63,725 nt of DNA, filler included, from Dicyema japonicum (GCA_011109175.1; 11 parts of 11 records of this genome joined end to end with filler, not necessarily neighbours in it); one strand, 5' to 3'; numbered from the whole stretch's first letter, positions 43,737 to 48,586 are shown. The notes: a model not told the origin generated them from the letters alone. A program made the numbers and translations.

Positions 43737-45270
43737 TAATTGACCATATTATTACTGTGTAATAAGTCATTATCAATCAAATGATGCAATGAAACTGTCC
43801 AAATTGTTGGGTCATCTTAGGAGAATACATTCGGATAAAAAAAATAAACCATTTGAGTATTTTGAAGAATTAAAGGATTCTTTTCGTAAGCAAAAAACGA
43901 TTGACACTGTTTTTACAAATAGAAGTAAAAGAAACAATAGTTGTAGTAATTTTAAATTATATTCAGGAGGACTAATTGCATCCTATAAAATTGCAATGAT
44001 TATTGCCAAAAATGAGAGTTCCCATGTTTCTGGTGAAAATCTCNATAATAGACCATATTGCTTACTGTGTAATAAGTCATTATCAAATGATGCAATGAAA
44101 CCCTCCAAATTGTTGGATCATCTTAGGAGAAAACATTCGGATAAAAAAGATAGACTATTAGAGTACTTTGAAGAATTAAAGGATTCTCTTCGTAAACAAA
44201 AAACGATTGACACTGTTTTTAAAAATAGTAATGAAAGAAACAATAGTTGTTATTATTTAAAATTATATTTAGGAGGACTAATTGCATCGTATAAAATTAC
44301 AAAGATTATTAACAAAAATGAGAGTTCCCATGTTTCTGGTGAAAATCTCATCAAACCATTTATATCAGTGATTCTATCAGATCTGATGGGTTTAAATCCT
44401 GACGAAATTTAAAAATCCGTGCCAATTAGCAATGATACAATTCGCCACAGGATTGACGAAATGTCAGATAATGTTGAACATATTTCATGTGAAAGGCTTA
44501 AAAATACTATTTTTTCGCTTCAAATTGACGAAAGTCATATATGTGACAACCAATCAATTCTAATGGGATATGTCAGGTTAATCTTATTAGAAGCTTACCC
44601 TTTAAGATATTTTGACGATCATGCTCTTCTTACAGAAGATTTATTATTCGTCAAATATTTGGAAACTGATACGACTGGATTTTCTATTTTTTCCGTAGTC
44701 AAATTATTTTTGATGACAAAAAGATTCCATATGAAAATTTGGTTTCTTGCGCCACAGATGGTGCAATGTCTATGGTTGGGAAGTATAAAGGATTTGCAGC
44801 ATATTTGAAAAAAAATTGTCCAAATGTGATTCATATACATTGCGTTCTACATAGACACCATTTGGTTTCAAAAGCTCTTTCACCAATTCTACATGAAACG
44901 TTAAATATAGTTATTAAAACCATCAACAAAATTAAAGCAAACAGCAAGTATGATCGTTTTTTTAGAAAATTTTGCTACGAGACTGGAGAAACTTATGTCC
45001 GTCTTTTGCTTCACACTGAGGTTATAGCTTCCAATTTTATTTTATAGGTACGATGGTTATCAAAGGGAAATGCATTAGAACGATTTTCATTTTCCGACAT
45101 CATACTGTGTTGAATGTGGATTTAGCATTGTACACCGAATAGTAAATAAAGAACGAAACAGATTGGATGTGTCCATTAGAGAACATCTTCGTTTGAAAAT
45201 AACATAAAGAGAGCCAGATAGCGAATCTTTGGTCAAAAAACATCAGTCACAGGGGTCCCATTGGTATTTA
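43737..45270 (+). mobile_element. hAT Buster/ZBED8-type transposase, internally deleted, N-terminus duplicated, three tiny introns
   Basis: BED finger CLLCNKSLSNDAMKPSKLLDHLRRKH; SNDTIRHRIDEM; FSLQIDES; CATDGAMSMVG; IHCVLHRHHL; HTE|VRWLSKG; C-terminus PTSYCVECGFS..RNRLD..QGSH. Confidence 0.9.
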
Positions 45271-47555
45271 ATTGTTTTTTATTATAGATTTATGCTTAGA
45301 TACTAGTTAGTTAACAAATATCGAATTTTTTTGTTTGATTATTAACANNNNNNNNNNNNNNNNNNNNNNNNNNNNNNNNNNNNNNNNNNNNNNNNNNNNN
45401 NNNNNNNNNNNNNNNNNNNNNNNNNNNNNNNNNNNNNNNNNNNNNNNNNNNNNNNNNNNNNNNNNNNNNNNNNNNNNNNNNNNNNNNNNNNNNNNNNNNN
45501 NNNNNNNNNNNNNNNNNNNNNNNNNNNNNNNNNNNNNNNNNNNNNNNNNNNNNNNNNNNNNNNNNNNNNNNNNNNNNNNNNNNNNNNNNNNNNNNNNNNN
45601 NNNNNNNNNNNNNNNNNNNNNNNNNNNNNNNNNNNNNNNNNNNNNNNNNNNNNNTCACTAAATAAATTATGTAATAGACAGTAAATGTATAGAAATATCA
45701 GTTTTCAATAGAATACATGTGAGGTGAAACAAATACAATATCAAATAAAACAATAGTAAACGTATGAATGACACAATATTTTATTACTAATGCAATTCAA
45801 AACATTACATAATAGAATCCCAAAACCAAAAATTAATATTTTCAAATTTTGTGATGCAAATTTGATGAAAATAATTCAATATTGTGCTATCAAATATAAT
45901 TAAAAACAAATATTAAATAAAAGATGTAAGCTGGTTCGAACTAGAATAGAAAATAATAACTAACTCCAATTAGAGCGATATTTTGTTTATCCACTAAAAT
46001 TAAATTCCTCAACTCATATCAAAATTTCAAATAAATTTACAACAATTACGTTTAACCATTAAAAAATTATATTATAAATTTAGAGTTTATATAATTAATT
46101 AACATTTTTTTTAATTTTTTAGGATTAAACATTTTATCCTAAAATAATCCAGAAATAAGTCCACGTCTTATAAACTAACTTAATTTAGTTCACCCTGTCA
46201 AGTATGTAGATTATCCTGGGAAAATCCAAAATCTCCTAACAAACTTCGACGTCACGAAAAAATCAAAAAGAGACCTTTCATTTTTTACGCCTAAGCACAC
46301 CCATGCGACTCTAAATGCGCTTTCATTGTTCAAAATGTAAGATTCGGGTCACCAGAGATCTCATTGGCTGAGAGAGCAGTCCAGGCAGAGCACATGACCT
46401 ATTCGACGAGGTACTGAGTCTTTTTCGTTAGTATATCTGTCTGAGAATACAGCCCAGAGAATCCGTAAGTCATTGTTTATCTCGACTTGTGGAATTGTCA
46501 TTTTTGAATTTGAAATTTACTTGATTTTTATTTGTTGAGGCTCATTCTTGACTACGCGACCAACTACAGCATTCAATGTTCAAGAAACAAAGCTGACTCG
46601 GCGTAGAAAAGTTCAGAACACTTGCAAGAAGTCTATTGTCGATGTTCTGACTTTCAGAGCACATGGACAATCTTTGGGGTTCTTGCACGTAGAAAAACTC
46701 AGGCTTATTAAAAATAACTTAATTTCCAAATTAATAAAACAGTAAACAAAAACATTAATCATAATAGTTATATAAGATTATTTGTCCTTCTTGATGTTTT
46801 GATGATTAAAGAAATAATTGTCTAATGACCTTTCTTCATAAATCTTCGATCTTGATAAAGTCCTCGTTTTCTTTAGGCAAAGTTGGTTCTATTTTCCAGA
46901 TTATTCCAGATTTCAATCCGCCCCGATAAAGTATTTATACTTGTTAATTACTGGAATTTACGTTCGCTGTTAATTCTTTTCCTCTTGCTATCTTATAAAC
47001 AATATCTTGTAATTTTAGGCTATAATCACAATTATTTAGCAATTAATGAGAACTTTTTTTTATTTACGACCTCCCATTTTTATTAATCCTAAATTTTTAC
47101 TGATTGCTACTGATTTTAATATTAATTACATATTTATACACACAGTGTAAGTATAACAAAATTTTAGTTTTTTGCCGGGATACAAAACGTCCTTTTGAAA
47201 TTCATATTGCAAGGTCCATAATGTGCCTCCTAATTGGTGAAGCCCAACCAATATCGTATTCATTTCGATACAAGCTTAGAATACTTGGAGGCGAGGGTGT
47301 TAAGTTAATTCTAGAGTAAGTCCATCTCTATTTCATAGCCTAGTGATAATTCTGAGTGGGAAATGAAGTACGGAACATTCACGGTGACAACTGTGGGAGA
47401 AACATTATCCAAGCGTGCAATGAGTGTCTTAAGCTTATTTCCATTATTGCATTCTTTGCTGGTTCAACTCAAGTTTTTGCAAAGCATAATATTTCTCCTT
47501 AACTTTTATCCAGACCTCGTTAGCCATTTAAGTGAGCGACNAGGGGAGAGTTTAA

Positions 47556-48586
47556 CTAGCTAATGGCCTCACGAGGCGCTCGGCCAGCCTCGCGAATAGC
47601 AAAGCCGTTCCCACGGATCACAGCGATCGACAGACGTTCCAAGAGCCAAGATGACTCTCTGGAGTCGTGTCTTATCCTTGATATCCGTCGACCGAGCGAG
47701 CGAAGGAAGCGGAGCGTCTTGGGGCCGAAGATCCCGGAAGACTCCAAAGCAATTGGAGTAAAAAAAAGCGAGTTCGAGAGGTGGCCGTACTTGAGAATCT
47801 TGCGATCCTCGGCGAGCCTCGAAGCGTGCCCAGGATCAACAGCGGACAAAGCGAGATTTCCGCGCGAGAATGTGTCTGAGCAGGTGGAGTCCCAAATAAG
47901 GGATTTCCCCTGCTCGTAAGGAAAGGTAGACATGCCGTCTGGGCGTTTGCCGTCTCCTCTATCCAGCCCAACTGGTTCGAGGATTGACGGGACACCCGCG
48001 GAAGCGAGGGCTCTTTGAATGATTGCGTTGAGTTCACTGTGGCGAGGGGCACGACCAGCACTCCGACGGCAAGCGAGAGGGTGCAAACCGTACTCGTCAA
48101 CAGTTCCCCCACAGCGGCATTTGTGCGCCTGACAGATCTTCAGCCCGACACGGANCCAGGATCAACAGCGGACAAAGCGAGATTTCCGCGCGAGAATGTG
48201 TCTGAGCAGGTGGAGTCCCAAATAAGGGATTTCCCCTGCTCGTAAGGAAAGGTAGACATGCCGTCTGGGCGTTTGCCGTCTCCTCTATCCAGCCCAACTG
48301 GTTCGAGGATTGACGGGACACCCGCGGAAGCGAGGGCCCTTTGTATGATCGCGTTGAGTTCACTGTGGCGAGGGGCACGACCAGCACTCCGACGGCAAGC
48401 GAGAGGGTGCAAACCGTACTCGTCAACAGTTCCCCCACAGCGGCATTTGTGCGCCTGACAGATCTTCAGTCCGACACGGAGGGAGATTGCGATACTTAGA
48501 CAATCCTTGTCCACCAGATTCCCGATGGAAGGGAGAGGGAGAGCCTTTAACCAAACACCGCTGCTTTGACAGCGACCTGCACGGAG
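47556..48586 (-). mobile_element. young CRE-clade retrotransposon 3' end with intact RLE ORF; partly duplicated across a single-N join
   Basis: ICQAHKCRCGGTVDEYGLHPLACRRSAGRAPRHSELN...DGKRPDGMSTFPYEQGKSLIWDSTCSDT...EDRKILKY; no stops in 47556-48086. Confidence 0.9.

Follow-up and report, generated by a model that had tools for sequence, protein, structure and literature searches.

We analyzed positions 43737–48586 of a 63,725-nucleotide (nt) window from Dicyema japonicum (GCA_011109175.1), the window being the whole stretch of DNA, in which 11 parts of 11 records of the genome are joined end to end with filler, and found in its left 1.6 kb the remnant of a Buster-type hAT transposase gene interrupted by three short segments with GT…AG ends. 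The geometry of these segments, their ends, their low guanine–cytosine (GC) content, and their lengths of 27, 30, and 27 nt led us to read them as introns. On the sequence evidence, we judge it probable, with a rough probability of 0.68, that they are fossils of three genuine spliceosomal introns of ultra-short size in the transposase gene of the family. The locus itself is a pseudogene, an internally deleted and nonautonomous copy, and the element belongs to a mobile high-copy family rather than being a domesticated gene.

The three candidate introns lie on the plus strand and were located by direct reading, tblastn, and MAFFT alignment, their coordinates agreeing exactly with those of the initial annotation. 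Segment 1 (44246–44272; 27 nt, GTTGTT…ATTTAG) sits in phase 1, contains no in-frame stop, and has a GC content of 11%; segment 2 (44577–44606; 30 nt, GTTAAT…TTTAAG) sits in phase 2 and is likewise free of in-frame stops; segment 3 (45021–45047; 27 nt, GTTATA…TTATAG) sits in phase 0 and ends with an in-frame TAG at 45045–45047. With GC contents of 11–30%, the segments are far more AT-rich than their flanks, and A-rich stretches are found 10–17 nt ahead of the AG. The initial annotation had stated that excision yields NNRGLIASY, GYVRYFDD, and HTEVRWLSKG, and translation and alignment bore this out: The split codons of segments 1 and 2 each rebuild an arginine, the halves of the third motif meet between HTE and VRWLSKG, and the restored positions R195 and E333/V334/R335/W336 are invariant or near-invariant. 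It had also noted that the third segment has an in-frame TAG and splits the HTEVRWL motif. The stop indeed falls between the invariant E333 and V334, so a working protein needs the segment to be removed.

The insertions became apparent by comparison with relatives. A phmmer search with a 106-residue stretch (44703–45020) against 1.8 billion representatives gave 2647 matches, the best at E = 5e-40 and the top ones 59–65% identical; the best protein identity to relatives was 42–65%. The closest full-length relative, P0002, has 592 residues encoded by an uninterrupted 1779-nt open reading frame (ORF) on a 2119-nt contig. It matched the window by tblastn at E = 1e-91, and a further relative, P0006, did so at E = 3e-83. 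In both alignments, gaps of exactly 9, 10, and 9 residues were placed at segments 1, 2, and 3 and nowhere else. We aligned a read-through of the window, with X at each stop, frameshift, and deletion, to 119 full-length relatives using MAFFT. In the nine columns that segment 1 inserts, and likewise in the nine of segment 3, no relative among the 119 had residues, and the flanking columns were filled in 119 of 119; at segment 2, about 10 columns were empty, adjoining a loop of variable length in 19 relatives, and the evidence is slightly weaker there than at the other two sites. The claim that the segments are insertions was thus upheld by the alignment, and equivalent amino-acid insertions were seen in none of the 119 relatives. 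Taking 0.0024 as the chance per placement in this sequence and allowing one to five placements per gap, we estimated the probability of GT and AG bounding all three gaps by chance at 1e-8 to 2e-6, depending on the sliding allowed.

The statement that Buster-type ORFs are usually intronless held for the two relatives checked in DNA, one in the Sipha flava genome and one on a metagenome scaffold, both of which were uninterrupted. Of the 119 full-length relatives, nearly all were found on contigs of 2–3 kb with an ORF of about 1.77 kb, and no relative with an interruption at the three sites was found among those compared. Among the proteins of 53–168 residues searched, there was neither a family member nor a spliced product, a scan of JGI metagenomes was likewise empty, and no record matched the exact ORFs. 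At the protein level only, one relative, P0012, was seen to end four residues past HTE. The contig encoding P0002 (L001, from SRR25018382, with the gene at 262–2040 and the library type unrecorded) has a GC content of 29% overall and 24% at third codon positions.

We placed the three sites on a model of P0002 predicted by AlphaFold with 43 relatives as input, at a predicted local distance difference test score (pLDDT) of 86. Site 1 corresponds to codon 94, in the middle of predicted helix 81–109, and would thus lie in a long helix ahead of the catalytic core. Site 2 corresponds to codon 195, within predicted strand 188–197, the second strand of the RNase H-like catalytic sheet and the one right after the strand carrying D179, and site 3 separates E333 and V334 of the HTEVRW motif. 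According to the model, retention of segments 1 and 2 would add 9–10 residues into a helix and a core beta-strand. A retained segment 3 would terminate translation.

The coding remnant runs from PYCLLC to HQSQGSH over 44045–45261 of the plus strand, passing through frames 2, 1, and 2. In a three-frame translation, frame 2 is open from PYCLLCNK (44053) through QIDES (44521) to SVVKLF (44709). Frame 1 takes over with DDKKIPYEN (44712) and continues via CATDGA (44748) and IHCVLHRHH (44835) to LLLHTE (45020) and, past the 27 nt of segment 3, to VRWLSKGNALERF (45048–45086), with VRWLSKG at 45048. Frame 2 then carries the sequence from FPTSYCVECGFS (45091) to HQSQGSH (45241–45261). The named relatives, from arthropods, reptiles, fish, a nematode, and a microsporidian, are annotated as SCAN domain-containing protein 3-like, zinc finger BED domain-containing protein 5-like, ZBED8, FAM200C-like, or transposase, and the precomputed domains of the relatives are PF27073 (FAM200-ZBED5 RNase-like), PF27046, and PF14291. 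Our local copy of Pfam was without PF27073 and PF27046; in it, zf-BED stayed below its cut-off of 20.6 bits, with 17.5 bits for the piece and 15.2 for P0002, and Dimer_Tnp_hAT, whose cut-off is 21.4 bits, reached 14.5 for P0002.

Searching the Protein Data Bank (PDB) with the P0002 sequence gave no match, but a fold search with its model returned chains of the Hermes hAT transposase as all of the top 12 PDB matches (E = 4e-10 to 1e-7). The fold was tested on this nearest relative and not on the broken copy, where the deletion leaves little of the helical insertion domain. The window nevertheless retains the residues at the invariant columns D179 (in QIDES), D246 (CATDGA), E543 (VECGFS), and W336 (VRW). 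The Hermes match and the kept residues therefore support the identification as a Buster-type hAT transposase made in the initial annotation, as do the tblastn score and the ZBED- and FAM200-named relatives, and they support the placing of the locus within the hAT superfamily, in the clade of Buster, ZBED5-8, and FAM200. We found no inverted repeats on L001 or on L003, and the ends of the element in the window coincide with the piece edge (5′) and the N gap at 45348 (3′).

The copy cannot produce a working enzyme. The reading frame meets a TAA at 44410–44412, shifts by 1 nt from frame 2 to frame 1 at 44711–44712, loses about 190 codons, approximately residues 346–535 of P0002, at 45086–45091, where the tblastn match stops at 45086 and resumes at 45091, and meets a second TAA at 45205–45207. 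The deletion falls in the helical insertion domain. Given the two stops, the frameshift, and the loss of 190 codons, no transposase can come from this copy, spliced or not. The native stop after QSQGSH has also been lost, with TGG in its place and 14 extra codons before a TAG at 45301–45303, and the 5′ end of the element is cut by the piece edge at 43737. These defects went unnoticed in the initial annotation. A nonstandard code in which TAA specifies glutamine, as in ciliates, was considered and rejected: Essentially every aligned contig reads T at 44411 (codon TTA) and all of them read C at 45205 (codon CAA), which makes the two stops private to the copy studied here, and a nearby GC-rich retroelement ORF has ordinary stops. 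We likewise rejected a fourth intron at 44695–44723, a 29-nt GT…AG stretch whose removal would mend the frameshift. Relatives align 11 similar residues there, and an extra G behind 44711 restores the frame in other copies. The stretch is clearly coding and its ends are a chance match, a caution for intron calls made by eye in AT-rich sequence.

The state of the wider family was assessed from Logan contigs, of unrecorded library type, by comparing region 44045–45346 and accepting pieces at 80–100% identity. Two runs of organism A, X1 and X2, contained 2520 and 459 contig pieces, a run of organism B (X5) 202, and a run of organism C (X6) 6, with a per-contig depth of 80–780 in X1. The depth showed no dip over the three segments, and contigs crossed segment 2 ungapped in X2 and X6. 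Among the variants listed, beyond which rare ones may exist, there was no well-supported alternative letter at the GT and AG ends or at the TAG. As the segments are kept across contigs, they are a fixed part of the element's DNA. The frame-restoring G behind 44711 was carried by 6 contigs in X1, representing about 6% of the depth, by 2 in X5, and by the sole X6 contig. At 45075–45089, many contigs continue into different sequence, indicating that undeleted copies exist. Within X5, 24 pieces were at least 99% identical to the window and 59 were 95–99% identical. The occurrence of the family in X5 and X6 might be due to contamination shared between the samples, to the organisms being closely related, or to horizontal transfer.

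The lengths of the segments match an intron class that is rare among animals. Introns below 30 bp are reported in animals only in myxobolid myxozoans and D. japonicum, in whose genomes the host introns have been shortened genome-wide, and the splice signals in such lineages are cut to approximately "GTa" and "AG" with a few A upstream of the AG; in Henneguya salminicola, the median intron is 27 bp and the genome has 29% GC (PMC13644364). The introns of T. kitauei are mostly 20–25 bp, and its repeats include hAT elements (PMC4986447). The D. japonicum genome has 36.7% GC and consists of repeats by 49% (PMC6736024). In Myxobolus genomes, DNA transposons can exceed 40%. The features of the piece are compatible with myxobolids and with Dicyema alike.

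We propose that the transposase gene of the family is interrupted by at least three ultra-short U2-type GT–AG introns, of 27, 30, and 27 nt, and that in intact members the host spliceosome would have to remove all three for a transposase of the usual length, about 590 residues, to be made. The pattern of insertions makes it likely that the segments are spliced in the family, and we infer that intact copies exist and that the host is an animal lineage with introns below 30 nt. In the copy studied here, the introns would be fossils, and any mobility would depend on enzyme supplied in trans. Since the DNA-checked relatives are uninterrupted, a gain in this lineage is the simpler reading of where the introns came from, and the introns appear to have been gained here. 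Its fuller form, in which three introns of at most 30 nt arose de novo after a Buster-type hAT lineage entered an animal with ultra-short introns, is a tentative proposal to which we give somewhat less than even odds.

Several observations weigh against the segments being spliced introns. Across the contigs of the four runs, a type of data in which rare forms are dropped, no segment was skipped by any of the joints or 27- and 30-nt omissions listed. X1 to X4 came from an RNA-kind query, and should one of these runs be RNA, its unspliced contigs would speak against efficient splicing. Most of the organism A contigs in X1 seem to share the frameshift, and the amplified lineage may therefore never have needed a working ORF, having been nonautonomous long since. 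No intact full-length copy, terminal inverted repeat, or target-site duplication was seen in the material, and the piece holds no host gene to show the intron size of the host. The 5′ ends are all GTT, unlike the GTa of the published logo of short-intron lineages. The family also occurs in runs labeled with three organisms, in part at 99% identity or more, which may reflect contamination or horizontal transfer. Finally, each of the lengths is divisible by three and neither segment 1 nor segment 2 contains a stop, a pattern that in-frame coding insertions would also show, and GT…AG pairs 24–32 nt apart are common by chance, with 26 of them in 1218 nt.

These last points, together with the frameshift of this copy and apparently of most copies in X1 and the ability of the spurious stretch at 44695–44723 to "repair" it, would favor the segments being ordinary short insertions or filler DNA of a nonautonomous lineage, never spliced and with coincidental GT…AG ends. 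We consider this very unlikely, as the chance of three exact gaps all being bounded by GT and AG is below approximately 2e-6, and the lengths of 27, 30, and 27 nt match the published intron mode in segments far more AT-rich than their flanks. A related possibility, to which we give a slim chance, is that the element derives from contaminating DNA of a host, such as a fish or cephalopod, or of another organism and that the segments are unspliceable insertions in a dead family. The family is found in runs labeled with three organisms, with some organism B contigs at least 99% alike; the roughly 28 million contigs of X1 and 36 million of X5 suggest mixed samples; and contamination is a known problem for such parasites (PMC6736024; 10.64898/2026.02.11.705288). 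However, the GC content of the element with its flank is 30%, similar to the parasite genomes and different from typical fish DNA; the depth of 80–780 per contig is high for a contaminant; and unless the genome has miniature introns, three GT…AG inserts of 27–30 nt are difficult to account for.

If the segments are real introns, their history and use could still differ from our proposal. They may have been inherited from an intron-bearing ancestral element and shrunk along with the host's own introns, a reading consistent with the genome-wide shortening of introns in myxobolids and Dicyema. L001, which is equally AT-rich at 29% GC, could be the spliced transcript of such an intron-bearing cousin. 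We regard this as unlikely, though, as the relatives checked in DNA are single uninterrupted ORFs, no interrupted relative was found, and nearly all of the 119 relatives lie on contigs of 2–3 kb with an ORF of about 1.77 kb. Splicing might also be regulated by stage or cell type, as for the third intron of the P element, with retention giving a truncated or altered protein that limits transposition. The stop in segment 3 would permit this, as would segments 1 and 2, which as stopless multiples of three are translatable if retained, and very short introns can splice poorly, at a median of about 25% in Microsporidia (cited in PMC13644364); we nevertheless hold such regulation to be quite unlikely, and the germline-restricted or splicing-based control of transposase suggested in the initial annotation is speculation. 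The same annotation offered the introns as a mark of domestication. Animals commonly have host genes derived from Buster elements, as is evident from the names ZBED5, ZBED8, and SCAND3 among the relatives, but a host-owned, ZBED-like gene with host-type introns is extremely improbable and already contradicted: The family comprises thousands of contig pieces, with variants that are 80–99% similar; the locus is a broken member of it, disrupted by a frameshift, two stops, and the loss of 190 codons; and the mismatches between two partial copies in the window are spread evenly over the codon positions (5/9/6).

The two partial copies just mentioned lie at the left edge of the piece. A first one, cut at its 5′ end by the piece edge, occupies 43737–44043 of the plus strand and contains the N-terminal coding region, from the putative zinc-finger part to GENL, as seen from a direct repeat and from translation; a TGA and an insertion of 4 nt set it apart from the second copy. 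The direct repeat (43776–44043 versus 44082–44349) is 268 nt long and 91% identical, with a spacing of 306. The counterpart of segment 1 in this copy, at 43940–43966 on the plus strand, is, as the initial annotation had it, 27 nt long with the GT…AG kept and an altered interior, differing at 5 of 27 positions. The flanks differ at 20 of 241, and a quicker divergence of the intron than of its flanks was not significant (Fisher P = 0.15).

Direct reading placed a single n, also unnoticed before, at 44044, the exact join of the two partial copies. A second apparent duplication, 47830–48129 versus 48156–48455 (99% identity, 326-bp spacing), likewise has an n, at 48156. The single n at the junction of both duplications raises the suspicion of unmerged overlapping contig ends rather than tandem repeats, and the 306-bp tandem duplication at 43776–44349 is probably a scaffolding or gap-closing join and may be no real repeat. 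In other family copies, the contig ends show that the sequence upstream of 44059 differs from the window. If 44044 is an artificial join, we suspect that the "paralogous copy" would be a second family member or an allele. On the other side, the 3′ part of the element covers 45262–45347 of the plus strand by translation, with the contig depth dropping over 45277–45346, and its 3′ end is undefinable because the sequence enters a 307-nt N gap (45348–45654).

Along the piece, GC content is 30% over 43737–45346, 31% over 45655–47550, and 57% over 47551–48586. The spacer at 45655–47550 is AT-rich, has short ORFs only, and yielded nothing from Rfam up to E = 0.1; it includes a moderately GC-richer island at approximately 46190–46700, and a further single n stands at 47542. 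The 57%-GC region carries on the minus strand, at 47556–48514, an ORF tail with ORFs of 176 and 124 residues. It has hundreds of eukaryotic relatives at 45–63% identity, one of them with RVT_1, and no Pfam match, and an atlas search gave only weak leads to reverse transcriptase-linked clusters. The tail probably represents a C-terminal portion of a retrotransposon ORF within otherwise 30%-GC DNA.

If the segments are introns, a high-copy transposon carries three introns of the sub-30-nt class in a gene that is uninterrupted in more than 100 relatives, a clean case of lineage-specific intron gain. Animal introns below 30 nt have been documented recently and so far in host genes. Hundreds of copies could date the gains and show at which intron positions changes are tolerated, providing a natural mutational scan of minimal splice signals. 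Should the de novo gain be true, the output of transposase would be tied to the splicing machinery of a few lineages, and the family would be a datable, multicopy record of recent intron gain. Such a dependence would act as a lock on the host range: An element needing a mini-intron spliceosome should fail after horizontal transfer from a parasite to an ordinary animal genome and would arrive dead in a fish or cephalopod host, whose spliceosome leaves 27-nt introns unprocessed. For annotation, transposon finders relying on ORFs will call such elements broken. The value of the case is limited by the splicing being inferred, by the copy in hand being dead, and by intron-bearing transposase genes being already known.

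The element resembles the Buster clade, which includes TcBuster, AeBuster1, and the domesticated ZBED5, ZBED8, SCAND3/ZBED9, and FAM200, in its putative N-terminal CxxC…HxxxxH zinc finger, in the acidic residues of QIDES, CATDGA, and VECGFS at D179, D246, and E543, and in its HC..HR motif, HTEVRWLSKG, and C-terminal HQSQGSH. It differs from the clade in having three GT…AG inserts of 27–30 nt where the DNA-checked relatives are single ORFs, and this copy, at a best identity of 42–65%, is broken and deleted. As introns, the candidate segments are similar to those of myxobolids and D. japonicum in being AT-rich and in showing little more consensus than GT…AG, and their 27, 30, and 27 nt compare with the median of 27 bp in H. 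salminicola and the 20–25 bp of T. kitauei; those introns, however, have been described in host genes, whereas the ones here would lie in a transposon and begin with GTT, not with a weak GTa.

Both introns in transposase genes and ultra-short introns in animals are known, and we found no report joining them in a Buster element. The P element has three introns, the third of which is spliced only in the germline, and Tol2 and Ac are hAT elements with introns. If our reading is correct, the family would share with these systems a transposase made only after host splicing, which opens the way to host- or tissue-dependent control. The introns of the P element, Tol2, and Ac are of ordinary size, however, while those proposed here would not exceed 30 nt, a lower bound that was formerly taken as absolute in animals, and would lie within the Buster clade.

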